Source of the DNA: Obrimoposthia wandeli
Taxonomy: Eukaryota
DNA: 64,000 nucleotides
Direction of reading: 5' to 3'
Assembly: GCA_977020255.1 (NCBI GenBank)
Contig: CDROCS010000253.1
Coordinates: 558,001 to 622,000, forward strand
Position numbers and translations under genes: made by a program. The notes beneath the pieces were generated by a model. It had not been told where the DNA came from, made no database searches, and saw only the letters and a list, made by a program, of their open reading frames with translations. Each line of letters starts with the position of its first letter. Position 1 is the first letter of the stretch. Of the stretch, positions 29,690 through 58,495 are shown piece by piece.

Positions 29690-30208
29690 TTACTTTAAGT
29701 AGTGAATACTTTGCTCTGTTACGCATTGAGTGAAACTTTTCTTACGCTCGCTATGTGAAAGAGCAGAGACAGCCTGCTTTACCAATTTCATTTTCTCTTC
29801 ACCTTCGGCTTTAGGTAAATGAGCAAGTTGTTCATGAAAGCAACCAAGCAAGCCAAAATTTAATGCCATATCTGATTGCATAGTATCTTCACCTAAACAG
29901 CTAGTTAGCTTATCTGCCAATGTGTTTTTATCCATTTCAGTGATTAAGTAATTTAGTTTATAGTCAACGTTGTCTATTTTTCTCACTTGATTACAAATAA
30001 AAAACATATCAGCAACTGCAACAATAGGAATTAATTGCTGATGTTGCTTACTAAAACGCTTTTTTAGCCATTCATTACGTGTTTCATTATTAACCGGGCC
30101 AGTATCAGTTGTAGAGGTTGCTGTATTTTCAGGAACAAACCACCATGCTTGGCTGGGTAATACGTAACAAGCAAGAACAATAAATAATAATTTTAATTCT
30201 ATTTTCAT
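29690..30208 (-). CDS. Exported hypothetical protein with four mature-region cysteines
   Basis: Signal-peptide-like N-terminus (MKIELKLLFIVLACYVLPSQA) and Cys in FICNQ, TSCLG, LGCFH, TQCVT. Start probably 30208, because ATG 30220 lies inside a repeat remnant. Confidence 0.7.
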   Translation of the reverse strand: MKIELKLLFIVLACYVLPSQAWWFVPENTATSTTDTGPVNNETRNEWLKKRFSKQHQQLIPIVAVADMFFICNQVRKIDNVDYKLNYLITEMDKNTLADKLTSCLGEDTMQSDMALNFGLLGCFHEQLAHLPKAEGEEKMKLVKQAVSALSHSERKKSFTQCVTEQSIHYLK

Positions 30209-30211
30209 ATA

Positions 30212-30270
30212 TATACCCATTCAAGATGCATATTTCAGTGTACTTGAGCAACATCACTTCATCGATGCGT
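30212..30270. repeat. Decayed fragment of the ERIC-like element
   Basis: TATACCCATTCAAGATGCA matches the 59005 terminus with a 6-nt deletion. CTTGAGCAACATCACTTCATCG matches the reverse complement of the internal arm near 59106-59127 with one mismatch. Confidence 0.7.
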
Positions 30271-30361: not shown

Positions 30362-30838
30362 ATGCCCAAACCACTAAAAACCTTAGCGAAGCTATTCTTA
30401 ATAACCATGGCATTATTATTCACTTGTAACAGTGCACACGCCAATGAACCGATAAACGAATTTGAACAAGCTATGGCACAATACCAAGGTAAAGTTGTCT
30501 ATTTAGATTTTTGGGCTTCTTGGTGCGTTCCTTGTCGTAAGTCTTTTCCATGGATGAATACCATGCAAGAAAAACATCAAAAACAAGGGTTTGTAGTATT
30601 AAGCATTAATCTTGATGCACAGATAACATTAGCAAAGAAGTTTTTACAACAAACACCAGCAAATTTTGCCGTTATTTATGATGCTAAAGGAAAGTTAGCA
30701 CAGAAGTTTAAATTAAAAGGTATGCCTAGCAGCTACTTATTCGATCGCCAAGGTAAGCTCATTAGTGCTCACTCAGGTTTTAATGGTAAAAAGCAGCAAC
30801 AGTATGAACATGAGATATCACAGGCACTAGCCCGATAA
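30362..30838 (+). CDS. TlpA-family periplasmic thiol:disulfide oxidoreductase
   Basis: Signal peptide, VYLDFWASWCVPCRKSFP, GMPSSYLFDRQG. Confidence 0.9.
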   Translation: MPKPLKTLAKLFLITMALLFTCNSAHANEPINEFEQAMAQYQGKVVYLDFWASWCVPCRKSFPWMNTMQEKHQKQGFVVLSINLDAQITLAKKFLQQTPANFAVIYDAKGKLAQKFKLKGMPSSYLFDRQGKLISAHSGFNGKKQQQYEHEISQALAR

Positions 30839-30892: not shown

Positions 30893-31672
30893 TTATTTTC
30901 GCGTGTTTTTGGTGTATTTCACCCAGATGTAAAGTCCACTTATTGATAAGAGAATCAATAACAATGCGATAAAATCCATAAAGAACACGCCAATATCACC
31001 CAGAATACGACCACTATGACTATCAATAATTATGCGTTCTAGTGTTAAAAATTGAGCACGATAAGCCAGTTTAGCCTGTTGTATTTTATCGTCAGAAGCA
31101 AGCTCAGATTGCAGCCATTTGGGTGTGTTTATGGGTTGAATAACTTGCCAATCAAAAAAATCACTATCGGTTTGATAATAGCCATTTTCACTTTCAACTA
31201 TCACCTCGCCTTTATTTATACTCATCGCTTTTATCATTTCTGGTACACCTGACTCAGTACCAAGCATGTCAACTAACTCACCGTTAAAGTTGTATAATAA
31301 AATGCTTTGGCGAGTAGCAATAACAAAAACCTCTTGCTGATTATGTTTCAATAACAACTGGCCAACACTCACAATGATAGCATCACTTTCAAACAATAAA
31401 TGCCCTTTAAGCCAAACACTATTATTGGTAACTTGGATAGTCTGTTGTTGATAAAAGCGAATATCTTGAGGTGCGGCAATACCATAATGGTCAAGTAACC
31501 AAGCACTTTTAATCGGCTGATGCGCCAAGGATAAACCATCGGTATGGTTAAGAGCTACCCCGGTAACAGATAAAAAAACAATAAAAAATGCAGCAAAAAC
31601 ACCTAATTTACGATGCCACTTTCTGAAGGTGCGATTTAGGTGTTGGGAGAATGGTTTAACAGTTTTTTTCAT
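30893..31672 (-). CDS. PepSY-associated TM helix protein (short form)
   Basis: RKWHRKLG, SVTGVALNH, DSHSGR, SISGLYIW: conserved His-containing TM motifs of the PepSY_TM family. Confidence 0.82.
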   Translation of the reverse strand: MKKTVKPFSQHLNRTFRKWHRKLGVFAAFFIVFLSVTGVALNHTDGLSLAHQPIKSAWLLDHYGIAAPQDIRFYQQQTIQVTNNSVWLKGHLLFESDAIIVSVGQLLLKHNQQEVFVIATRQSILLYNFNGELVDMLGTESGVPEMIKAMSINKGEVIVESENGYYQTDSDFFDWQVIQPINTPKWLQSELASDDKIQQAKLAYRAQFLTLERIIIDSHSGRILGDIGVFFMDFIALLLILLSISGLYIWVKYTKNTRK

Positions 31673-31775
31673 AAATATGCAGCAACTAAATAAAGGCTTA
31701 TAAGCTTCTTAAGCTAGGGAATAAAAAATAAGTCGTTATTTTGCCTGAGCATGTTCGTTTTAGCTAGTATCTGTT

Positions 31776-32288
31776 TTAAAGAGTCACTTTACTATTTAAC
31801 CACAGAGCAAGTCTGGCAACTTTTGTAGTTGCTCTTACCGATAAAGTTGCGCCCGTAATACCATCAATATGTTGACTGAGCATTTTATCTTTTGTCAGTG
31901 TCGCACGCGTGAATTGTTCACTATAAAAATCATGACGAACTTCATCGCCACGGGTTTCTCTATAAGTAAGTACTTTAAGCTGCTTAATTGCACCTTTGTG
32001 GATGTGTACGGCAATAGTGATAGGCTTTTCTTTACCGACTTCATTTAAAACCCAGGCAGTATCATTATCTTTTTGCCAATAACGTACCCGCATACGATTG
32101 TATTTATGACTCAGTATTTCGGTAATAATTTTTTTATCTTCCGCACTTAACCACAGTACTTGCACTGCAGGTACTTGCTCAGAAAAAGCCCCTTTAAGGA
32201 ATTTTTCAGGTGTTTGATATACGCCTTTAGCCATAACATTCAGTGCTAAAATACAATACAAAAATACAAAAAATAAAAATTTTCTCAC
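31776..32288 (-). CDS. Exported FMN-binding domain protein (flavinylation substrate)
   Basis: IDGITGATLS [S/T]GA[S/T] flavinylation motif, YRETRGDEV. Probable GTG start at 32288 gives a clean signal peptide (ORF track starts at TTG 32336). Confidence 0.85.
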   Translation of the reverse strand: MRKFLFFVFLYCILALNVMAKGVYQTPEKFLKGAFSEQVPAVQVLWLSAEDKKIITEILSHKYNRMRVRYWQKDNDTAWVLNEVGKEKPITIAVHIHKGAIKQLKVLTYRETRGDEVRHDFYSEQFTRATLTKDKMLSQHIDGITGATLSVRATTKVARLALWLNSKVTL

Positions 32289-32367
32289 CGCTTTACTCTT
32301 AACTCTTAATAAATTAAAAAACTCAACACTGCGCAAAGCAGAGTTGAGCCAATATTATTTGTGTTAA

Positions 32368-33546
32368 CTAAAACTGATAACCAAAACCTACGTTAAAACC
32401 TTTTGAATCTTTAGCGCCACCTAAGTCTTCATAATCTGCTTTTAACACTACATTTTCATGTAAGAAATAGTTAACACCAACACTCGTTGATTCAACAGCT
32501 GTTGAATCACTATTACCTGCTTCGTTATCATATTCAGCGTAACGAGCAAATACTCCAATTTTTTCATTCAGTTTATATGAAGGCTCAAGATACCAACCAG
32601 TTTGCTCATCACGGCCTAATGATTGTGCTTCTGTACCATTAATATCCCAACGCGCATATAAAGCACGAACACTAAAATCATTGAGCTGATAAATAGCATG
32701 TGTTTCAAACAACGTCGCATCTGCTGTATCAACACCGGCAGCACCTTGTGTTATATCGCTTTGATATTGTAAGGTCGCAGCAAGCTCTAAGCCAGTTATT
32801 GCTGTGTATTTAACACGACTGGTAAAAGCTAAGTTTTCTGCATTCGCTTTTGATACTTTTTGACGTCCGCTACGAATGTTATATGCCTTACCACCGGTGG
32901 TATCAACTTCTAAACCACTGGTCGCAGCAACATCAATACTAACGCCACCTGCTGGTTTATAATTAAATGCGGCACCCGCTTCCCACCATGTTGCAGGGAT
33001 AATATTTTTCTCAACACCATTACGTTCAACACCGTAGAATGCTGGTGGCTCATGCGTTTCATTAATGATACCAACTGGGATTAAGAATAAACCAACTGTT
33101 GCTGTTGATTCAGCATTAATATCTACTTCAACATAGGCTTGCTCTAATTCTACTTCACCAGCTTTACCGTCGCCTGAAATGGAATGCTCTAATTCAAATT
33201 CTGAGAAAAAACGTACGCTATCTGAAAATTCATGCCCGAAAAATAAAACAAAACGATGGAAATCTATCTGAGCATCTTTATCTTCATAGTTGTTGTAATG
33301 CAACTCGCCGTAGCCACCAATCGTAGTATTAGCAAACATATTGCTAGCACTTTCAGTAACCACTTCAACTTGCTCAACGGTTGCTTCAAGTTTTTGTTCA
33401 GTTTCATCTAAACGCTTTTCTAGTGACTTAAGTACTTCTTGTTGTTGACTGATGACTTTTCGTAGTTCAGTAGTTTCTTCATTCGCTATAGCAGCATTAC
33501 TAGCAAACAATGCAGCAATAATCGAGGCAGTTAATGTTTTGTTCAT
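32368..33546 (-). CDS. Outer-membrane beta-barrel porin with an N-terminal coiled coil
   Basis: Signal peptide, heptad coiled coil, GGYGELHYNN, RFVLFFGHEF, ELEQAYVE, HEPPAFYGVER, alternating beta pattern, C-terminal GYQF. Confidence 0.85.
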   Translation of the reverse strand: MNKTLTASIIAALFASNAAIANEETTELRKVISQQQEVLKSLEKRLDETEQKLEATVEQVEVVTESASNMFANTTIGGYGELHYNNYEDKDAQIDFHRFVLFFGHEFSDSVRFFSEFELEHSISGDGKAGEVELEQAYVEVDINAESTATVGLFLIPVGIINETHEPPAFYGVERNGVEKNIIPATWWEAGAAFNYKPAGGVSIDVAATSGLEVDTTGGKAYNIRSGRQKVSKANAENLAFTSRVKYTAITGLELAATLQYQSDITQGAAGVDTADATLFETHAIYQLNDFSVRALYARWDINGTEAQSLGRDEQTGWYLEPSYKLNEKIGVFARYAEYDNEAGNSDSTAVESTSVGVNYFLHENVVLKADYEDLGGAKDSKGFNVGFGYQF

Positions 33547-33618
33547 GTTATTTATCCGGAATAGTTAATGTTTAATAGAGCGTATTATATTTATTTTTCG
33601 TTATTAAAGCACAAAACA

Positions 33619-33643
33619 AATAACAATCAATAGCATTTGCATT
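33619..33643 (-). promoter_or_regulatory. Candidate overlapping Fur boxes upstream of the porin operon
   Basis: AATGCTATTGATTGTTATT (14/19) and AATGCAAATGCTATTGATT (12/19) versus AATGATAATCATTATCATT, offset by 6 bp. A TATAAT lies on the minus strand at 33584-33589. The AT-rich background lowers specificity. Confidence 0.5.
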
Positions 33644-33712: not shown

Positions 33713-33749
33713 AAAAAAACCTATTTCAGTTAAACTGAAATAGGTTTTT
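33713..33749 (-). terminator. Intrinsic terminator after mscS
   Basis: AAAAACCTATTTCAGT-TAA-ACTGAAATAGGTTTTT with a 7-U tail on the minus strand. Confidence 0.88.
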
Positions 33750-34770: not shown

Positions 34771-37308
34771 ATGGCAACCCTGCTATCTTTTTTTACCCAC
34801 AAATTTTTTAAAATATTATTAGCTTTATACTTGGGCTTATTTTCGCTTATTTGGCTTATTTCCTCCCCCGTAGCTAAGCACTTTATCCAGCCTATTTTAG
34901 CTGAACACCAATTACAGCTTTCAGATGACGCCAGCATTCGATTTAATCCATTTTTAATGCGTCTCATCCTGAGTGACATAGGTTTATCTAGTACGAAAAG
35001 TAAGCAGCAGGAAACTGTGTTTGCCTTGCAAGAATTAAAACTACAAGTAACCTTATGGCAATTAGCCTTTGATAAAATTGTATTGAGTGAATTTTCACTT
35101 ACGCAAGGTACATTGAAAGTTACGCAGCATAATGATCGGTTAGTCATTGCTGGCATAACAATTCCTCCTGCAACGAAAGAGCAACAAGCTAACGACCCTG
35201 TAAAGGAAGAGTCTTTTAATGAGCCCGTAACAAACCTTCCTTATCAGCTAGTGTTACCTAATTTTCTGTTGAGCCAATTTCATATTGAAATAGAAATAGA
35301 CAAGCAACAACAAAATAAAATCCATCATGTAGAAATTGAGCAACTCACCTTAAGTCAAATAAAGGCAACTCAAACGAAGCAAGAGGGTAACTTATCATTA
35401 ACCACTTTAATCGATAAAACCCAGCTAGTACTTACCGCGAATACGCAATTAATATCAGGTAAAGGCGATATTCAAAGTAATGTACGTATAGATAATTATC
35501 CTATTGGAAAGTTAGCGCTCTATGTTGAAGAACTTACTGAATTAAAAGGCCTCCTCTCTTTTAATAGTCAGCAAACAATTACACTTACTGAGCAAGGTAT
35601 AAATTTTAGCGTGCAAAAAGCCAGCTTAACATTGCAAGATCTACTGTTAGCTTTGGCTGAGCAAAGTTTTACCCTCAAGACCTTCCAACATAATTTATCT
35701 GATGCTGCCATCAACTTACAAGATAACAAGATTGCTCACCTAGCAGGTAATAGCAGCATAACATTAACCGATGCCCTGCTCAGTCAAAATGAGAGTAAAG
35801 CGACCATTACCGCCTTTAAGCAACTTAGCCTCAATGACATCAACTTTGTTTTAGATGATGAACCCAGTATTGATATTGCCGAACTAGTAATGGATGATTT
35901 ACTTTTCTCTAAAAAAACAGCTTTAGCTGATGCTGTTGCCCAGAAAGCTATCAATAGAATTAATAAGCTTTCTGCTGAAGATGGACTTGATATCGCTGCA
36001 GCAGCAATTGTGAGTCTGCCGCCAGTAATGCAATTAAAGCAATTGACAGTAAATAACTTACATATCCACGAAAAAAGTATTCTCATCAATAGTATTATTT
36101 TTGACACCTTAATCGGTGAGATTATTATTAAGGAAAACAAGGATATTGCCAACTTAATTATTTTGGAGGACACATCAAACGAACAAAGCACTGCACAGCC
36201 GAGTCTCACTGAAGAAGTCATTGCAATTGAAACAGAACTAGAAGCTAAGGGAGCCGAGGCAAACCGCGATGGCTTTGTTTTCAGCTTCAAAGAACTTAGC
36301 TTTATTAATGATAATTCTTTCAATTTTACCGATTTCAGTGTTGACCCTATCTATCAGCGCACTTTATTTCTAGACACCTTAACTGTAGGTCCTTTAAGCA
36401 ATAGTAAAGATAAACAGCAAGACCAAACCCCTTATATGCTAGCTGGTCGTAGTAATAAGTACGCCAACTTTAACTTATCTGGCTATATACAACCTTTCTC
36501 AGAACTGGCGACTTATCATATTAAGGGCGATTTTAAAGAGTTTTCATTACCTGCTATTTCTTCTTATTTGAAAGCGTCTACTGGTATTGAAGTAAAAACA
36601 GGTCAACTCGATACCGCTTTAGAACTTACCCTAACTGGTGATGAACTTGAAGGGAATGTTGTCGTGTTGCTACAAGCACTAGAAACGGGCTTAGTTAATA
36701 GTGAAGAAGCAGGAAGCTTAATTGACCAAGGTGCATTACCATTAAATATGGCAATGGGCATGCTAAAAGATGGTGATGGTAATGTAGAGCTTGATGTCCC
36801 GTTAAGTGGCTCTATCTCAGATCCAAAATTTGGTGTAAGTAGTATTATTACCTTGATTACCAAAAAAGCCATTATGTCTGCGACACAAGATTACTTAATG
36901 ACTACCTTTGTCCCCTACGCCAACATAGTATCTATTGCAATAACGGCTGGCGAATTCGCCTTAAAGTTACGCTTTGATGATTTAGAATATCAAGTTAGAC
37001 AAATTGAGCCTGATGACCGTCAAAGTGCCTACTTAAAAGACTTCATTGCCTTAATGCAAGAAAAGCAAGATACCCGTATAACGATTTGTGCTATCAGCAC
37101 ACCAGCGGATATAGGTATTAAAGCAGGTGTTTCGGTAACAGACAAAACAGATATTAAACACTTACTCGACATTGGTGAACAACGTGAACATGCCTTTAAA
37201 GACCATTTAATTGAACAGGGTAAAATTGATTCATCCCGTATTTTGTTCTGTAAGCCTCAAATAGACAGCGACGAAGGAGCAATGCCACGTATTGCAATAT
37301 CAGTCTAA
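34771..37308 (+). CDS. DUF748 / AsmA-like large envelope protein
   Basis: N-terminal TM, RFNPF, repeated beta-rich segments, LKDGDGNVELDVPLSGSISDPKF motif typical of DUF748, degenerate OmpA-like tail. Family assignment is from memory. Confidence 0.7.
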   Translation: MATLLSFFTHKFFKILLALYLGLFSLIWLISSPVAKHFIQPILAEHQLQLSDDASIRFNPFLMRLILSDIGLSSTKSKQQETVFALQELKLQVTLWQLAFDKIVLSEFSLTQGTLKVTQHNDRLVIAGITIPPATKEQQANDPVKEESFNEPVTNLPYQLVLPNFLLSQFHIEIEIDKQQQNKIHHVEIEQLTLSQIKATQTKQEGNLSLTTLIDKTQLVLTANTQLISGKGDIQSNVRIDNYPIGKLALYVEELTELKGLLSFNSQQTITLTEQGINFSVQKASLTLQDLLLALAEQSFTLKTFQHNLSDAAINLQDNKIAHLAGNSSITLTDALLSQNESKATITAFKQLSLNDINFVLDDEPSIDIAELVMDDLLFSKKTALADAVAQKAINRINKLSAEDGLDIAAAAIVSLPPVMQLKQLTVNNLHIHEKSILINSIIFDTLIGEIIIKENKDIANLIILEDTSNEQSTAQPSLTEEVIAIETELEAKGAEANRDGFVFSFKELSFINDNSFNFTDFSVDPIYQRTLFLDTLTVGPLSNSKDKQQDQTPYMLAGRSNKYANFNLSGYIQPFSELATYHIKGDFKEFSLPAISSYLKASTGIEVKTGQLDTALELTLTGDELEGNVVVLLQALETGLVNSEEAGSLIDQGALPLNMAMGMLKDGDGNVELDVPLSGSISDPKFGVSSIITLITKKAIMSATQDYLMTTFVPYANIVSIAITAGEFALKLRFDDLEYQVRQIEPDDRQSAYLKDFIALMQEKQDTRITICAISTPADIGIKAGVSVTDKTDIKHLLDIGEQREHAFKDHLIEQGKIDSSRILFCKPQIDSDEGAMPRIAISV

Positions 37309-37408: not shown

Positions 37409-38257
37409 ATGAAAGGGTTTAGTAAGTTTTTTATAGCACTATTGTTGCCATTACTTTTAAATAGCCATGCTTCATTAGCAGCACAAGTAGCAACCACCAA
37501 CCAAGAAACAATAACAAACCAACACGGTAAATTAGTCTGGGCCGACCTTTACACTGGGGATGTTGAAGCTTCACTTAAGTTTTATCATGATACCTTTGGC
37601 TGGACAGTTAAAGCGTTTGCAGAAGAACAGGTAAAATATCATTTACTTTATGATGATGGTCAAGCCATTGCTGGCGTGCTTGCTCGTGATTCAAAACGTA
37701 ACAAAACAGATAATGCCTTATGGGTTGGTAGCATAGATATTGATAATGTATCGAGTAGAAGTGAACTCGCCGCTAAAAACAATGCCACTATCATCTTGGC
37801 ACCTCATGACTTTACTCTTTATGGTAAAAGATCGGTATTAGCCGATCCACAAGGCGGCGTTATTGCACTGCTTGAGTTAGACCTTACTAACAAGAACCAT
37901 AAAAAAATAAGCAATAAATGGGATTGGGCACAGTTATTTAGTACTAATACTAAACAAGCCGCTTTATTTTACCAAGACACTTTTGATTATATCTTAGAGC
38001 CAATTAACAGCAATAAAGATAGCTTCTTTTTAATTCGATCGGATAGGGTTCAAGCCAGCATTGTAAAGCTACCCGAATCATTTGAGCAAAGAGATCGTTG
38101 GGTCAACTTTATTGAAGTTAACAATCTCGACATTATATTGTCAAAAGCGACAACCAACGGCGCAACTATCATTTATCAACCGACAGGTAGAGACTTAGCC
38201 ATTATTGCTGATCCAAATGGCGCATTACTCGGTTTAACACAGCAGGAGAGTGAATAA
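37409..38257 (+). CDS. Exported tandem VOC (glyoxalase/bleomycin-resistance fold) protein
   Basis: Signal peptide; two VOC modules (GKLVWADL..FY..TFGW, DPQGGVIAL; WDWAQL, ADPNGALLGL). Confidence 0.82.
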   Translation: MKGFSKFFIALLLPLLLNSHASLAAQVATTNQETITNQHGKLVWADLYTGDVEASLKFYHDTFGWTVKAFAEEQVKYHLLYDDGQAIAGVLARDSKRNKTDNALWVGSIDIDNVSSRSELAAKNNATIILAPHDFTLYGKRSVLADPQGGVIALLELDLTNKNHKKISNKWDWAQLFSTNTKQAALFYQDTFDYILEPINSNKDSFFLIRSDRVQASIVKLPESFEQRDRWVNFIEVNNLDIILSKATTNGATIIYQPTGRDLAIIADPNGALLGLTQQESE

Positions 38258-53925: not shown

Positions 53926-56900
53926 CTAGGCAGCGCTACCCACTTCTTTAATTCCCTTAACTTGAGCAGCTTGATTACCTTCTTTTTTTAGCGTTATTGT
54001 TGTAGTTGCCTGTTTATCTTCTTTACGCTTATCTCTTAACACCAATAGACAAGGTGTTAGCACTAAGGTTAATACCGTAGCAAAAGCTAAGCCGCCAGCG
54101 ATAGCTGTTGCTAGTTGTGTCCACCACTGTGTTGATGGAGCACCAAAGACAATAGTACGCTCAAAGAAATCTAAGTTTACCTGTAATACCATAGGCAGCA
54201 AACCCAAAATGGTGGTTATTGTGGTTAACAGAACAGGCCGTAAACGCTGCGCGCCCGTTCGTAAAATGGCATCAACAACTGGATAGCCCTCTTTACGTAA
54301 AACATTATAGGTATCAATCAACACAATATTGTTATTGACAACAATACCCGCTAACGAGATAACACCAATACCGCCCATCACAATACCAAACGGTTTTTGC
54401 ACTAATAAAAGTGCTAAAAATACGCCAACAGTTGAGAATATGACGGCACTTAGAATTAATAGTGCTTGATAAAAGCTATTGAATTGAGTCACTAAAATCA
54501 TTGCCATTACAAAGAGCGCGATAGCAAAAGCATTAACTAAAAACGCTTGAGATTCCTGTTGATCCTCATTCTGCCCCTTAACATCAATATCCACTGACGG
54601 GTGTAACCCAAGTGTCGGTAACTGTTCTTGCAAACTAGGCAATTCATTCAATAGTTGAGCACCGGCAATTAAATTTGCCTGTACAGTAACAACTCGCTTA
54701 GCATCAACACGACGAATAGTATCAACTTTAGGTGCGGCTCTACGCTCGACAAAACTGCCAACAGGCACTAAACCAGACGTTGTCTTTAAGCGTAGTGAAT
54801 CTAAACGACTTATATTACGTTTTTCTTCAGGAAAGCGAACTCGAATATCCAGTTCATCATCAACATCGTCAGGGCGATATTCACCAAGCTTTAAACCGTT
54901 AGTAACCATTTGCACACTTGAACCAACTAATGCGGCATCTGCGCCATAAGTAGCGGCTTTATTTCGATCAATAATGAGCTGCCATTCTATGCCTGGTTTA
55001 GCGCCAGTATCTTCTATGTCGGTGAATTTACCTGTGGCTTGTAATGCCTCTCGTATAATTTTCACCGATTTATCGAGTTCTCCAGGAAAACGCGAGCTCA
55101 ATTCAAGTTTAAGGTCCTTACCACTTTGTGGACCGTTTTCATTTTTTCTCACTTCAATTTCAACGCCGGCTAAGTCATCCGTTAACGCGTGAATATTGGC
55201 TACTATGTCATCCGCTGAACGTCTTATCTGCCAATCAACAAAGTTTAATTTAAAAGTACCAATTTGGTTATTACCACCCGTTCGAGTATATAAGGTTTCA
55301 ATTTCCTCTAGCGGTAAAATACGTGCTTCTATAGAACGCATAATCACGTCTTTTTCTTTGATGGATAAATCGCCATGGGAACGCACCACCATAGTAGCAC
55401 TTTGTGGCTCAACCTCAGGAAAGAAGCTCACGCCAAGACCTGATGTTCCATAGAGCCACATCACCACAAAAGATATCGCAAAGGTACCAGCAACTATTTT
55501 CCAAGGATGTCTAATTGCCGTTGTCAGTACACGAATATAACGACCGGTAAAACCCGATAACTGATTGAATTCTCCCGCTTCAACATGTTCTATTTGCTGT
55601 TGTTCATTTTGACTAACGATGCGTGCTTTACCCAACACAGTGCCTAATGTGGGTACAAAGATCAACGCCATTGCTAAGGAAGCAGATAACACGGCAATGA
55701 GTGTGAATGGTAAGTATTTCATGAACTCACCCATAATGCCCGGCCAAAACATCAAGGGTGCAAACGCTGCTAATGTTGTTGCCGTTGAGGCAATGATCGG
55801 CCATGCCATGCGACGAGCGGCTGTAGCATAAGCAACACTTTTACTATGCCCTTCATTCATTTGTCTGTCTGCAAATTCGGTGACAACAATGGCGCCATCA
55901 ACGAGCATTCCCACTGCCATGATCAGGCCAAATAGCACCACTATATTTACTGTCATTCCTGCTAGGGCGATGACTAATATTCCGGTTAAAAAGGCCCCTG
56001 GAATGGCTAAACCAACCAACAAAGCTGTGCGGCCGCCTAAAGCAGCAATAATGACAATAACAACCAATAATACCGCTGAAAAAACGTTATTTTGCAAATC
56101 TGTCAGGGTATTTTTGATTTCTATTGATTGGTCACCAACATAATCGACTTTAACTTGTTGTGGCCATTTGACACGGCTTTCATTAACAATCTCTTTAACT
56201 TTATCAACCGTTTCAATCAGGTTCTCACCAGAACGTTTTTTGACTTCTATCGAAACAGAACGATGACCATTTAATCGGGCAAAGCTGGTGGGATCTTTAT
56301 AAGCACGACGCACCGTGGATACATCTTGAAAGGTGATCACGCGATCGCCATCAACCTTAATAGGCAGCTCAAGTAAGTCTTGAATATTTTCAAAAACAGA
56401 AGGCACTTTGATGGCAAAACGCCCTTTGCCAGTATCCATTGTTCCTGCGGGCACTAAGCGATTGTTACGCTCAACAAGGTTATAAATATCAGTTTGGTCA
56501 AGCCCGTAACTTTCCATTAATAATGGATCGACAATGATTTCAACCATATCTTCACGGTCGCCACCAATCTCAACTTCTAGCACTTCTTGCATGCCTTCAA
56601 TTTTATCTTTTACGTTACGCGCTATTGTTATCAAGCCTCGCTCAGTAACTGCGCCAGATAAAACAACAGTGAGTGCTGCTTCTTGATTAGCCATGGTGAC
56701 TTCATTAACCACGGGCTCTTCAGTCTCATTAGGCAACTTAGCTTTGGCTAAAGTCACTTTATCTCGCACATCGGCAAGTGCTTCTTTAGGATCAAGTCCG
56801 GCAATAAACTCTAAGGTAACAGAGGCATGGCCTTCACCAGCATTTGAACGCATTTCTTTAATGCCAGCGATAGATTTAAGCTCATTTTCCATCGGCCTTA

Positions 56901-57093
56901 CGAGCATACGTTCAGCATCTTCAGGAGAAATACCATCATGCACCATAGACACATAAATAATAGGAATGGTGATATCTGGATTGGCTTCTTTAGCAATGTT
57001 GTTATAGGTAACTGCACCAGAAATAAGCAGTAGTACAAATAACATCAATACAGAGCGAGTGCGGGTTAATGCGGCTTCAATAAGCGTTAACAT
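53926..57093 (-). CDS. RND efflux permease (AcrB/AcrD/AcrF family)
   Basis: 1055 aa, 12 TM, GMLVDGAIVVTE, RLRPVLLTT. Confidence 0.95.
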   Translation of the reverse strand: MLTLIEAALTRTRSVLMLFVLLLISGAVTYNNIAKEANPDITIPIIYVSMVHDGISPEDAERMLVRPMENELKSIAGIKEMRSNAGEGHASVTLEFIAGLDPKEALADVRDKVTLAKAKLPNETEEPVVNEVTMANQEAALTVVLSGAVTERGLITIARNVKDKIEGMQEVLEVEIGGDREDMVEIIVDPLLMESYGLDQTDIYNLVERNNRLVPAGTMDTGKGRFAIKVPSVFENIQDLLELPIKVDGDRVITFQDVSTVRRAYKDPTSFARLNGHRSVSIEVKKRSGENLIETVDKVKEIVNESRVKWPQQVKVDYVGDQSIEIKNTLTDLQNNVFSAVLLVVIVIIAALGGRTALLVGLAIPGAFLTGILVIALAGMTVNIVVLFGLIMAVGMLVDGAIVVTEFADRQMNEGHSKSVAYATAARRMAWPIIASTATTLAAFAPLMFWPGIMGEFMKYLPFTLIAVLSASLAMALIFVPTLGTVLGKARIVSQNEQQQIEHVEAGEFNQLSGFTGRYIRVLTTAIRHPWKIVAGTFAISFVVMWLYGTSGLGVSFFPEVEPQSATMVVRSHGDLSIKEKDVIMRSIEARILPLEEIETLYTRTGGNNQIGTFKLNFVDWQIRRSADDIVANIHALTDDLAGVEIEVRKNENGPQSGKDLKLELSSRFPGELDKSVKIIREALQATGKFTDIEDTGAKPGIEWQLIIDRNKAATYGADAALVGSSVQMVTNGLKLGEYRPDDVDDELDIRVRFPEEKRNISRLDSLRLKTTSGLVPVGSFVERRAAPKVDTIRRVDAKRVVTVQANLIAGAQLLNELPSLQEQLPTLGLHPSVDIDVKGQNEDQQESQAFLVNAFAIALFVMAMILVTQFNSFYQALLILSAVIFSTVGVFLALLLVQKPFGIVMGGIGVISLAGIVVNNNIVLIDTYNVLRKEGYPVVDAILRTGAQRLRPVLLTTITTILGLLPMVLQVNLDFFERTIVFGAPSTQWWTQLATAIAGGLAFATVLTLVLTPCLLVLRDKRKEDKQATTTITLKKEGNQAAQVKGIKEVGSAA

Positions 57094-57101
57094 AATAGCT
57101 C

Positions 57102-58286
57102 CTAGTCTTGTGCAGCGTTAGTGGCAGCCGCTTGCTTATCAGCACCATGACCTGCGCTATGACCTACGTTAACATCTGCTTTGTCATCTATTTGGTCGAA
57201 GATGGCTGCAACTTTATCGCCAGCTCGCACGAAGCCTTGCCCTAGAACAATAATATCGGCTTGCTCGCCAAGACCTGTTAACCATATACCATCATTTTCA
57301 CTTTTAATAATCACAATTGGCGTAAATTGCACAATAGATTTTTTTACTGATTTAACGCCAATATTACCTTTTTCATCTAAAGCCAGTAATGCAGGAGATA
57401 TTTTTATCGCCGACATTTTAGCTAAATCGATAGTTAATTCACTGCTTAATCCTGCTAATAATTGCGCTTTTTTATTATCAATGGCCACTTCAATTTTAAA
57501 AGTATTGGTCGCATCATTACCAACACTGGCTATGTAACGCAGCTTACCTTGTGCTTTTTCGCCATTTAATAAAGTGACTTGTGCCATTTGGCCAACAGAC
57601 AACTGAGTTATTTGTAACTCGGTTACATGAGCGCGGACAATGAGCGGGTCTAAATCAGCAATCATGGCAATATCATCACCGGAGGCAACATAATCGCCTA
57701 CTTCGACATAACGCGTATTAAGAATACCAGCAAAAGGTGCCTTGATAATGGTATTGGCAATGTCTAACTCTAATCTTTTTATTTCAGCTTTAACTGACTC
57801 GAGATCTGCATATGATTGCGCTAACTGCACTTTACCTTGATAACCTTGTGCATTTAACTTTAATGCGCCTTGATATTCCACTTCACGTTGGTTCAATAAT
57901 GCATGGCTTCGTGTTAATTTCGCTGGTAAATCATTTAAAGCAATTTTTGCAATAACCTGCCCTTTGGCAACTTTTGAGCCCCTTTTTGCTAATACCTCAA
58001 TAATTTTCCCACGTATTTCTGCTTTTAAAGTAGTAATACGATTAGGCTCGGTACGACCATAAAGCTCAATTGTTTTATGAATATTTTGTCCAAATCGAGT
58101 TTCAACTTTAACTTTTGCTGTTACCTGCTTTTCATCGTGACTAGGAATTTGTGCTTTTATCTCAGATTTTTTCTCAGCAGCACTCGGGCCAGAAGCCATC
58201 CATAGCACTAACACAAAGGTAATTAATACTGCAATAAGGTAAGGTCGTTGTGCTAACCAGCTAGAATTTAGGGTAAATTTCATCAT
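57102..58286 (-). CDS. RND periplasmic adaptor (MFP)
   Basis: TM anchor, LKAEIRGKI, IIKAPFAG, VEVGDYV. Start moved to ATG 58286, which has a GGAG Shine-Dalgarno. Confidence 0.92.
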   Translation of the reverse strand: MMKFTLNSSWLAQRPYLIAVLITFVLVLWMASGPSAAEKKSEIKAQIPSHDEKQVTAKVKVETRFGQNIHKTIELYGRTEPNRITTLKAEIRGKIIEVLAKRGSKVAKGQVIAKIALNDLPAKLTRSHALLNQREVEYQGALKLNAQGYQGKVQLAQSYADLESVKAEIKRLELDIANTIIKAPFAGILNTRYVEVGDYVASGDDIAMIADLDPLIVRAHVTELQITQLSVGQMAQVTLLNGEKAQGKLRYIASVGNDATNTFKIEVAIDNKKAQLLAGLSSELTIDLAKMSAIKISPALLALDEKGNIGVKSVKKSIVQFTPIVIIKSENDGIWLTGLGEQADIIVLGQGFVRAGDKVAAIFDQIDDKADVNVGHSAGHGADKQAAATNAAQD

Positions 58287-58495
58287 AATATCTCCATATT
58301 TATGGCGAATATCATAACGTGTTTTATCAGGGGGAGATAAACTAACTTGCAACAAAGTGTTAATTTTTTTGTTAGTTTTTGTAAAAAATAACAATGCCGA
58401 CAAGGTGTCGGCATTTATCGTATTTTGCAATGGCTTGTCATAACAACAAAGCTTTATGCGTTATGTTGAAGTAATGACCTTATCTAGTTAGAAGG

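Follow-up and report, generated by a model that had tools for sequence, protein, structure and literature searches.

Gene content and boundaries of the locus

The DNA analysed here, a stretch of 64,000 nucleotides (nt) from an assembly deposited under Obrimoposthia wandeli (GenBank GCA_977020255.1, contig CDROCS010000253.1, positions 558,001 to 622,000 of the forward strand), is referred to in its entirety as the window, and its own numbering is used throughout. Between positions 30893 and 33546 it carries three co-directional minus-strand open reading frames (ORFs), which encode an outer-membrane porin, an exported protein of the FMN_bind family and an inner-membrane protein of the PepSY_TM family. 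By its sequence, the source genome of the window is that of a Colwellia-like marine gammaproteobacterium; the nearest of the loci fetched for comparison belong to Colwellia psychrerythraea, C. demingiae and an uncultured Colwellia metagenome-assembled genome (MAG), with 84–88% identity in the middle (FMN_bind) protein. The genes of this trio and its upstream limit are as follows.

32368..33546, minus strand: porin gene, 392 amino acids (aa), Pfam Porin_O_P match at 6.4e-10
31776..32288, minus strand: FMN_bind gene, 170 aa, exported product, Pfam FMN_bind match at 6.7e-10
30893..31672, minus strand: PepSY_TM gene, 259 aa, Pfam matches to PepSY_TM at 1e-13 and to PepSY_TM_like_2 at 2.9e-8
33715..33749, minus strand: intrinsic terminator of mscS with a 16-pair stem, a 3-nt loop and a T-run, taken as the upstream limit of the unit

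Judged against the curated Pfam gathering cut-offs, Porin_O_P (PF07396) scores 39.2 bits where 20.9 are required, FMN_bind (PF04205) 39.9 where 22 are required, and PepSY_TM (PF03929) 52.2 where 28.8 are required, with PF16357 at 34.4 against 27. An earlier reading of the same DNA (the original prediction) had described three co-directional genes of exactly these types, had called for searches with the corresponding profiles and had placed a strong terminator between the trio and mscS; the scores agree with the first description, and the stem at 33749-33715 with its T-run agrees with the last. At the other end, the region after the PepSY_TM gene yielded no convincing terminator (z = -0.9). The gap between the FMN_bind and PepSY_TM genes measures 103 nt in the window; across the orthologous loci its median is 72 nt, and the two genes sometimes overlap. 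None of the three proteins contains a CXXCH motif, and no cysteine occurs in them anywhere outside a signal peptide.

One gene start requires correction. The ORF list places the beginning of the FMN_bind gene at TTG 32336 (31776-32336), a codon that overlaps an intergenic hairpin described below. The true start is almost certainly GTG 32288, giving a protein of 170 aa, because the relatives are about 170 aa long, the resulting signal peptide is clean, with cleavage between VMA and KG, and translation then begins downstream of the hairpin. The GTG codon is preceded by a ribosome-binding site of the AAGAG type.

Conservation of the trio across genera

A profile of the FMN_bind protein retrieved relatives from at least 294 species-representative genomes, and the best 80 loci, those nearest to the query, were inspected. 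In all 80, each from a different species, the gene order and strand are identical, with the porin gene directly upstream and the PepSY_TM gene directly downstream of the FMN_bind gene, an arrangement far beyond chance. The carriers comprise Colwellia, Thalassotalea, Shewanella, Parashewanella, Cellvibrionales, Cycloclasticus and unclassified Pseudomonadales and Alteromonadaceae, and include culturable bacteria such as Colwellia psychrerythraea, Shewanella amazonensis, S. algae and S. xiamenensis. The flanking genes vary by lineage and define at least six distinct genomic contexts: ompR, envZ and pckA in Colwellia; DUF3581, a TonB-dependent receptor, PBP1 or hrpB in Shewanella; and rpsB with tsf, fusA, or a CLC/redoxin/HemJ block in other lineages. 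Since the trio stays constant while its flanks change, we conclude from these comparisons that it is a self-contained, co-inherited module. A lack of co-conservation would have counted against the original prediction, and the linkage turned out to be strict.

A conserved hairpin between the porin gene and the redox pair

Within this unit, the spacer between the porin and FMN_bind genes (79 nt in the window) folds at -19.7 kcal/mol, with z = -2.6, and contains a terminator-like element.

32314..32350, minus strand: hairpin (32350-32320) followed by the run TTTTTT (32319-32314), between the porin stop and the FMN_bind start

Surveyed in 79 loci, with a hairpin of -7 kcal/mol or better and a T-rich tail as the criterion, 54 of the 79 spacers between porin and FMN_bind genes contain such an element, compared with 8 of the 79 spacers between FMN_bind and PepSY_TM genes. 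The hairpins are kept by position, and their sequences differ among loci. This pattern suggests that the element is a conserved attenuator or partial terminator that would give a high ratio of porin to redox proteins. In the window there is no room for a separate promoter ahead of the FMN_bind gene, which implies that some transcripts read through. The unit is thus not a plain operon, because a conserved terminator-like hairpin separates the porin gene from the FMN_bind/PepSY_TM pair. Of the operon originally proposed, the linked trio of genes on one strand stands, and its simple form does not.

Predicted iron-responsive regulation and recruitment of iron transporters

Potential binding sites of the ferric uptake regulator Fur were sought in the 250 nt upstream of the porin gene in 76 loci, using the 7-1-7 consensus AATGATAATNATTATCATT and allowing up to four mismatches. 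Two elements are relevant in the window.

33619..33637, minus strand: Fur-box-like palindrome AATGCTATTGATTGTTATT, with four mismatches to AATGATAATNATTATCATT, starting 91 nt upstream of the porin ATG
33584..33589, minus strand: TATAAT hexamer just downstream of the Fur-like box, a possible -10 element by consensus match only

A Fur-type site is present upstream of the porin gene in 60 of the 76 loci (79%). The corresponding rates are 1.7% for composition-matched shuffles, 2.1% for 250-mers taken at random from genomic sequence and 5.6% for the remaining intergenic segments of these loci. Most orthologous loci hold better boxes, with one to three mismatches, at the corresponding position, which is about -85 to -95 in Shewanella and the more distant genera; in the remaining Colwellia loci it is mostly -120 to -200. 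The TonB-dependent receptor and feoAB genes of the same loci served as a positive control and carry this type of box with two to three mismatches. The strict 19-mer consensus of Escherichia coli finds no site at three or fewer mismatches in the window, so that the 7-1-7 form and the comparison between species were needed to recognise the site at 33637-33619, which is clearly a degenerate homologue of the better Colwellia boxes. The promoter scan reported no full promoter at 33584-33589. Control of the trio by iron is accordingly a strong prediction for the family and a weaker one for this genome.

In a subset of loci (numbered L011, L012, L037, L074, L080 and L081 in our collection, and positions 33619-33640 of the window) the box upstream of the porin gene reads AATGC(A/G)AAT...TTTGCATT. 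These boxes are palindromes with GCAAAT half-sites, unlike the canonical Fur hexamers. They could be a form of the Fur box peculiar to certain lineages, or else be recognised by another regulator of the Fur family.

A second link to iron comes from the neighbourhood of the trio. The ferrous iron transporter gene feoB adjoins it in four loci and in two layouts: upstream of the trio in two Alteromonadaceae MAGs, and as feoAB directly downstream of the PepSY_TM gene in two Thalassotalea genomes (L035, 5549-8100, and L040, 5737-8288). In the latter, the spacer between the PepSY_TM gene and feoA holds a near-perfect Fur box, AATGAGAATCATTATTATT, with two mismatches and about 97 nt past the PepSY_TM stop codon. 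The FeoB lineages of the two layouts are just 46% identical, which suggests two independent juxtapositions. In the window itself, no Feo, Ftr or ABC iron transporter and no ApbE is found among the annotated ORFs of at least 180 aa between about 13 and 58 kb, in keeping with the earlier observation that no ABC, Ftr or Feo transporter is encoded alongside. The connection to iron that had been drawn originally is strengthened by the Fur-type box shared across genera and by the two kinds of feoB adjacency.

These data bear directly on two alternative interpretations. The first holds that the trio reduces Cu(II), Mn(III/IV) or another periplasmic oxidant, in the way that CrpH-type proteins support the supply of copper to haem-copper oxidases. 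The precedent is CrpH of Bordetella, a PepSY_TM protein that a 2026 study connects with copper starvation and with the function of oxidases; the authors of that study emphasise the wide variety of periplasmic domains and substrates within the PepSY_TM superfamily. Moreover, the His- and Glu-rich porin described below would suit several divalent metals. The upstream box is nevertheless of the Fur type and matches those of the feoAB and TonB-dependent receptor genes of the same genomes, the gene recruited beside the trio is feoB and not a copper gene, and none of the flanks examined contains copper chaperone or oxidase genes. We regard a role with another metal or oxidant as improbable.

The second interpretation is that of an iron-sparing replacement, in which, when iron is scarce, a flavin carrier and a small b-type cytochrome would take over a task normally performed by iron-rich periplasmic c-type cytochromes, such as protein repair or respiration, and the porin would admit the substrate of that task. 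Replacement of ferredoxin by flavodoxin provides an analogy, and the predicted Fur control fits such a switch as well. The combination of a membrane protein with haem b and a periplasmic partner also resembles MsrPQ, a system that a 2024 paper on flavinylation places alongside PepSY proteins on structural grounds. In the flanks examined, though, the trio is never accompanied by a gene for a reductase or a repair enzyme, and the only functionally suggestive recruits are feoB and the TonB-dependent receptor, so that this explanation seems to us quite improbable.

The porin

In its AlphaFold2 model (pLDDT 78.9, exceeding 85 over most of the barrel) the porin consists of a signal peptide (residues 1-21), a helix (22-64) and a 16-strand barrel (74-392). 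Two parts of the protein are of particular interest.

33355..33483, minus strand: N-terminal periplasmic helix, predicted coiled coil, residues 22-64, one helix in the model, with low pLDDT as a monomer
32980..33087, minus strand: loop L3, the presumed constriction, residues 154-189, rich in Glu and His (E163, H165, E166, E174, E179)

The helix displays conserved positions of the a/d type (L28, I32, Q35, L39, L42, L46, T49), and the earlier description of a barrel with a periplasmic coiled coil is matched by the 16 strands, the single helix and this heptad pattern, with the low confidence of the helix in the monomer as a caveat. Comparable N-terminal extensions occur in DcaP of Acinetobacter and in FapF, and a weak NCBIfam match to the FapF N-terminus was found at the N-terminus of the porin. 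Loop L3 lies between strands 5 and 6, includes short helices and is the most conserved segment of the protein, with a mean identity of 92% over 81 orthologues. The porin as a whole has a mean column identity of 60% across genera, which is far above what is usual for outer-membrane proteins.

The charge of the protein is equally distinctive. The mature porin contains 60 Asp and Glu residues and 29 Lys and Arg residues (net charge about -31); the positions conserved in at least 90% of sequences include 27 acidic and 11 basic residues together with 7 His, five of them invariant and two at 96%; and by sequence the polar faces of strands 1, 3 and 4 are rich in Glu. By sequence, an acidic, His-rich composition of this kind would suit a cation or metal pore better than an anion pore of the OprP type.

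Databases label the protein either as an 'OprO/OprP family phosphate-selective porin' or simply as a 'porin', and one might accordingly suppose that it is an ordinary OprO/OprP phosphate porin whose adjacency to redox genes is meaningless. It does share with OprO/OprP (PF07396) and other 16-strand trimeric porins the Pfam match, the 16-strand barrel and an inward-folded L3, and Foldseek lists OprP (2o4v) among its matches. That list, with E-values around 1e-13 and TM-scores around 0.6, also includes OmpK36, OmpC, OmpU and ChiP, and the TM-score of 0.59 to 2o4v is equalled or bettered by other general porins; a profile search of the Protein Data Bank (PDB) gives no significant match and does not reach OprP by sequence. 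By sequence the conserved residues are strongly acidic and His-rich, which points away from an anion pore with its arginine ladder and lysine cluster, and OprP is without an N-terminal coiled-coil extension. Nor is there a sign of control by phosphate starvation through PhoB: the window contains no Pho box at three or fewer mismatches, Pho-box scores upstream of the porin gene in 76 orthologues are no better than those of shuffled sequences, and the predicted regulatory site is of the Fur type. Together with the linkage in 80 of 80 loci, across orders and despite changing flanks, these observations disfavour the phosphate-porin explanation, which we consider highly improbable.

The FMN_bind protein, a predicted flavoprotein

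The exported protein carries a flavinylation motif.

31839..31865, minus strand: motif DGITGATLS, with Thr148 (codon 31847-31845) as the predicted FMN-bearing residue

The motif reported originally is thus present, and only its coordinates need to be shifted by one base, to 31865-31839. It conforms to the attachment pattern D-x-x-[S/T]-G-A-[S/T], and the choice of Thr148 follows what is known of the targets of ApbE. In 80 orthologues D142, G143, I144, T145, G146, A147, T148 and S150 are each conserved in at least 95% of sequences, as are the flanks of the motif, the family motifs GKEKPIT and RGDEVRH and three His residues. The protein has a Sec signal peptide (residues 1-20) with the conserved A20 at the cleavage site and no lipobox, and, judged by its sequence, it is soluble and periplasmic. 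ApbE is presumably encoded elsewhere in the genome, because none occurs in the window where its ORFs were annotated (between about 13 and 58 kb); it is likewise missing from the recurrent flank families of the trio loci.

Among characterised proteins the closest in type are RnfG/NqrC and PplA of Listeria, with which the trio protein shares the FMN_bind domain, the [S/T]GA[S/T] motif and an extracytosolic location. Proteins of the PplA type pass electrons to ferric iron. The trio protein differs from these in being a soluble, single-domain protein with a cleavable signal peptide, neither a membrane-anchored pump subunit nor a lipoprotein, and in having its own invariant motifs GKEKPIT and RGDEVRH; its NCBIfam matches to RnfG remain below threshold (about 20-23 bits, with cut-offs of 102-230).

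A half-size PepSY_TM protein

The third protein is modelled with high confidence (AlphaFold2, pLDDT 90.5) as two transmembrane (TM) helices, residues 8-42 and 226-258, that flank twelve β-strands.

31613..31615, minus strand: codon of His20 (WHR motif, cytoplasmic side of TM1), invariant in 81 sequences, counterpart of FoxB H9/R10 and H198
31544..31546, minus strand: codon of His43 (NH motif, periplasmic end of TM1), with N42 and H43 invariant in 81 sequences
31139..31462, minus strand: periplasmic domain, residues 71-178, all-β, three four-stranded sheets (DSSP on the model), half-propeller-like
31016..31018, minus strand: codon of His219 (DxHSGR motif, periplasmic start of TM2), aligning with FoxB H339, and R222 with FoxB R342

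The His motifs noticed originally in the inner-membrane protein (WHR, LNH and DSHSGR) were all recovered, and H20, H43 and H219 are the three invariant His residues of 81 orthologues, despite an identity of about 30% between Colwellia and Shewanella; D217, S220, G221 and R222 are invariant as well. A search of the PDB with the single sequence gave no significant match, and a profile of the orthologues reaches the di-haem ferric-siderophore reductase FoxB (7ABW) with E = 1.9e-5, through the two TM motifs only. WHRxxG aligns with H9/R10 and more weakly with the region of H198, and DxHSGR aligns with H339/R342. In FoxB, H198 ligates the cytoplasmic haem, R10 contacts the propionates of that haem and R342 contacts a propionate of the periplasmic haem, while the PepSY cavity binds ferrioxamine (bioRxiv 10.1101/2021.01.28.428567).

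The resemblance to FoxB is therefore confined to part of the molecule. A chain of FoxB type holds two bis-His haem b sites in a bundle of at least four TM helices, and here there are two TM helices and three invariant His; in place of periplasmic PepSY domains enclosing a substrate cavity there is a propeller-like all-β domain, and no Pfam match to the PepSY domain (PF03413) was obtained. All significant Foldseek matches are WD40 or other β-propellers, including 6r5y, an eight-bladed propeller composed of two four-bladed fragments. The protein had been viewed as a FoxB-like PepSY-TM protein, and that view holds as regards the PepSY_TM match and the haem-site motifs, but not in the sense of a small FoxB. 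With two TM helices and one copy of each haem motif per chain, FoxB-like binding of two haems requires a homodimer, and on the model the protein probably works as such, with a four-helix, two-haem bundle capped by a six-blade propeller.

Compared with the FoxB-type reductases at large (FoxB 7ABW, FpvG, FsrB and HiuB; PF03929/COG3182), the trio protein shares the PepSY_TM match, the aligned haem-site motifs and the link to iron regulation. It differs in having two TM helices where those have at least four, a single copy of each motif, three propeller-like blades instead of PepSY domains, and a porin and an FMN_bind protein as partners instead of a TonB-dependent receptor. The CrpH paper also states that all the PepSY_TM proteins compared there have at least four TM segments.

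The comparison with FoxB brings forward the main rival to the interpretation that we favour. Here the FMN_bind protein and the PepSY_TM cytochrome would reduce ferric siderophores or xenosiderophores delivered by TonB-dependent receptors that are encoded elsewhere or, in some Shewanella, next to the trio, and the porin would serve a separate purpose, for example influx of Fe2+ or other cations, connected to the redox pair by iron regulation alone. FoxB, FpvG, FsrB and HiuB, the characterised PepSY_TM reductases, all act on siderophore iron that enters via such receptors; in 11 Shewanella loci the gene immediately upstream of the trio encodes a TonB-dependent receptor and has a separate Fur box; the hairpin partly uncouples the porin from the redox pair; and an acidic pore suits Fe2+. 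Against it, conservation within the trio is highest in the porin, which has been neither lost nor exchanged for another gene in any of the 80 loci, whereas just 11 of them have the receptor; in addition, the periplasmic half-propeller is not the PepSY cavity with which FoxB binds ferrioxamine. We hold this alternative to be unlikely, though it deserves serious consideration.

A model for reductive iron acquisition

At the level open to sequence analysis and modelling, most of the original interpretation is upheld, with the corrections given above. Taken together, the data slightly favour, over all other explanations combined, the proposal that the trio is a Fur-controlled module for reductive iron acquisition that is spread across the cell envelope. 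Low iron would lift repression by Fur, and the porin would be made in excess, since the hairpin after its gene would end a share of the transcripts before they reach the FMN_bind and PepSY_TM genes. Inorganic or loosely chelated Fe(III) would cross the outer membrane through the dedicated acidic, His-rich and trimeric porin. In the inner membrane, the PepSY_TM homodimer would rebuild a FoxB-like four-helix bundle, with one haem on the cytoplasmic side between the two His20 residues and another on the periplasmic side between the two His219 residues, and the two three-blade halves would form a six-blade propeller on top. The dimer could then carry electrons from a donor in the membrane or cytoplasm across the inner membrane to the exported FMN_bind protein, flavinylated by ApbE on Thr148, which would reduce the Fe(III). 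The Fe(II) produced would be imported by a transporter encoded elsewhere, most likely FeoB. The parts of this scheme that we infer are dimerisation, the loading of haem and FMN, the direction in which electrons move, the nature of the substrate and its passage through the porin.

Several considerations weigh against the proposal. The hairpin between the porin gene and the redox pair means that the porin could be expressed independently. The Fur-like site of the window has four mismatches and those of its closest relatives four to six, so that this particular lineage may be under weaker control by Fur. In 76 of the 80 loci the trio has no linked gene for an inner-membrane iron transporter, and a profile search of the PDB with the FMN_bind protein finds no solved relative. 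An acidic pore suits cations such as Fe2+, which would need no reduction, and seawater does not contain Fe(III) as a simple cation. If a fixed complex is envisaged, the threefold symmetry of the porin would not match the twofold symmetry of the cytochrome. Finally, the 2026 work on CrpH connects another PepSY_TM subfamily to copper, not iron.

A bolder version of the model would make the trio a route of reductive iron uptake in marine gammaproteobacteria that is independent of both siderophores and TonB. The acid- and His-lined trimeric porin would capture inorganic or weakly bound iron, its coiled coil of about 6 nm would dock the flavoprotein and the dimeric, propeller-capped cytochrome b, reduction would take place at the exit of the porin, and Fe(II) would be handed to FeoB. 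We think it rather doubtful that all these elements hold together; if they did, bacteria would have an equivalent of the reductive strategy by which yeast and plants take up iron, assembled from a porin, a covalently bound flavin and a new, half-size class of PepSY_TM cytochromes.

Relationship to known systems

A survey of flavinylated systems (Méheust et al. 2021, PMC8238504) catalogued 3220 PepSY-like flavinylation clusters and proposed that they are assimilatory iron reductases; they contain mostly DUF2271 (2833 of 3220), DUF4198 and ApbE, and some include TonB-dependent receptors or VIT1. The operational definition of that study is a PF03929 or PF16357 gene clustered with a gene for an FMN-binding protein or ApbE that bears a signal peptide, and in the trio an FMN_bind gene of this description adjoins the PepSY_TM gene. 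By gene content, the trio thus belongs with these bioinformatically catalogued systems, of which so1188-1190 of Shewanella oneidensis is an example: they too combine a PepSY-like membrane protein with an exported substrate of flavinylation of the ApbE type, they are predicted iron reductases, and Fur-repressed examples are known. The trio differs from them in that its flavin carrier is an FMN_bind protein, no ApbE is linked and a dedicated porin is obligatory. Neither the 2021 paper nor its 2024 follow-up mentions a porin, and the accessible portion of the supplement text of the former contains no mention of PF07396 or Colwellia.

Two gene groups of S. oneidensis were considered as counterparts of the trio. 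The first, so1188-1190, is Fur-regulated but was rejected, being of the PepSY-like type with a CbiK/DUF4198-like periplasmic protein. For so3406-3408 the equivalence could not be shown: the S. xiamenensis trio lies beside pckA, hslO and gspCD, which we take to be a different region of the MR-1 genome. The iron transcriptomics available for Alteromonas discusses only PepSY proteins with 4-8 TM helices beside TonB-dependent receptors. Our literature search found no paper on the porin/FMN_bind/PepSY_TM trio, in agreement with the earlier statement that no functional characterisation of the three-gene form was known to its author.

In its general layout, with the gene for an outer-membrane barrel linked to genes for redox proteins of the periplasm and the membrane, the trio also recalls conduits of the MtrCAB type. 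It differs from these in that CXXCH motifs are lacking, a 16-strand porin is too narrow to sheathe a protein, and the cofactors would be flavin and haem b.

What appears to be new in the trio is the obligatory acidic coiled-coil porin, the half-size, propeller-capped PepSY_TM protein and the internal attenuator. It is an open question by what means marine heterotrophs acquire iron when no siderophore that they can recognise has bound it, and periplasmic reduction steps are poorly defined even in model organisms; the trio offers a possible metal-selective porin and a predicted periplasmic reductase that would be soluble and flavinylated. From a minimal PepSY_TM cytochrome with two helices one could learn how duplication gave rise to the four-helix fold of FoxB, and the reading of the porin proposed here would correct the widespread label of a phosphate-selective porin.

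Neighbouring genes

On one side of the trio, between 13115 and 27395, the window contains a type II secretion operon (gspC to gspL), hslO and pckA. In the S. xiamenensis locus (L081, 8931-14576) the trio lies beside pckA, hslO, hslR and gspCD, and the gsp/hslO/pckA neighbourhood seems to be common to Colwellia and at least one Shewanella lineage.

The minus-strand ORF at 29690-30220 encodes an exported protein of 176 aa that belongs to no Pfam or NCBIfam family. Homologues lie between the trio and ompR in 28 loci of the Colwellia group and are absent from the other genera, and the ORF probably reflects synteny and is not part of the module. A gene for a TlpA/ResA-like periplasmic thioredoxin (30362-30838, plus strand) is convergent with the PepSY_TM gene and has homologues near the trio in 12 loci. 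It was considered as a functional partner and set aside, as it is missing from most loci and in two distant ones belongs to the CLC/redoxin/HemJ (UPF0093) block.

Beyond mscS and divergent from it, the plus-strand ORF 34771-37308 encodes a DUF748 protein of 845 aa with a weak N-terminal match to the LIC_11026 family, which is kept only in the closest Colwellia loci. The next ORF on that strand listed here, 37409-38257, specifies an exported protein in which two domains resemble those of the glyoxalase/bleomycin-resistance type. It also has a sub-threshold match to KbpA, an AfsK-binding protein of actinobacteria, which is odd for a gammaproteobacterium. Farther away, the minus-strand genes at 53926-58430 encode an ordinary RND efflux pair, consisting of an AcrB-family pump of 1055 aa and a membrane-fusion protein.

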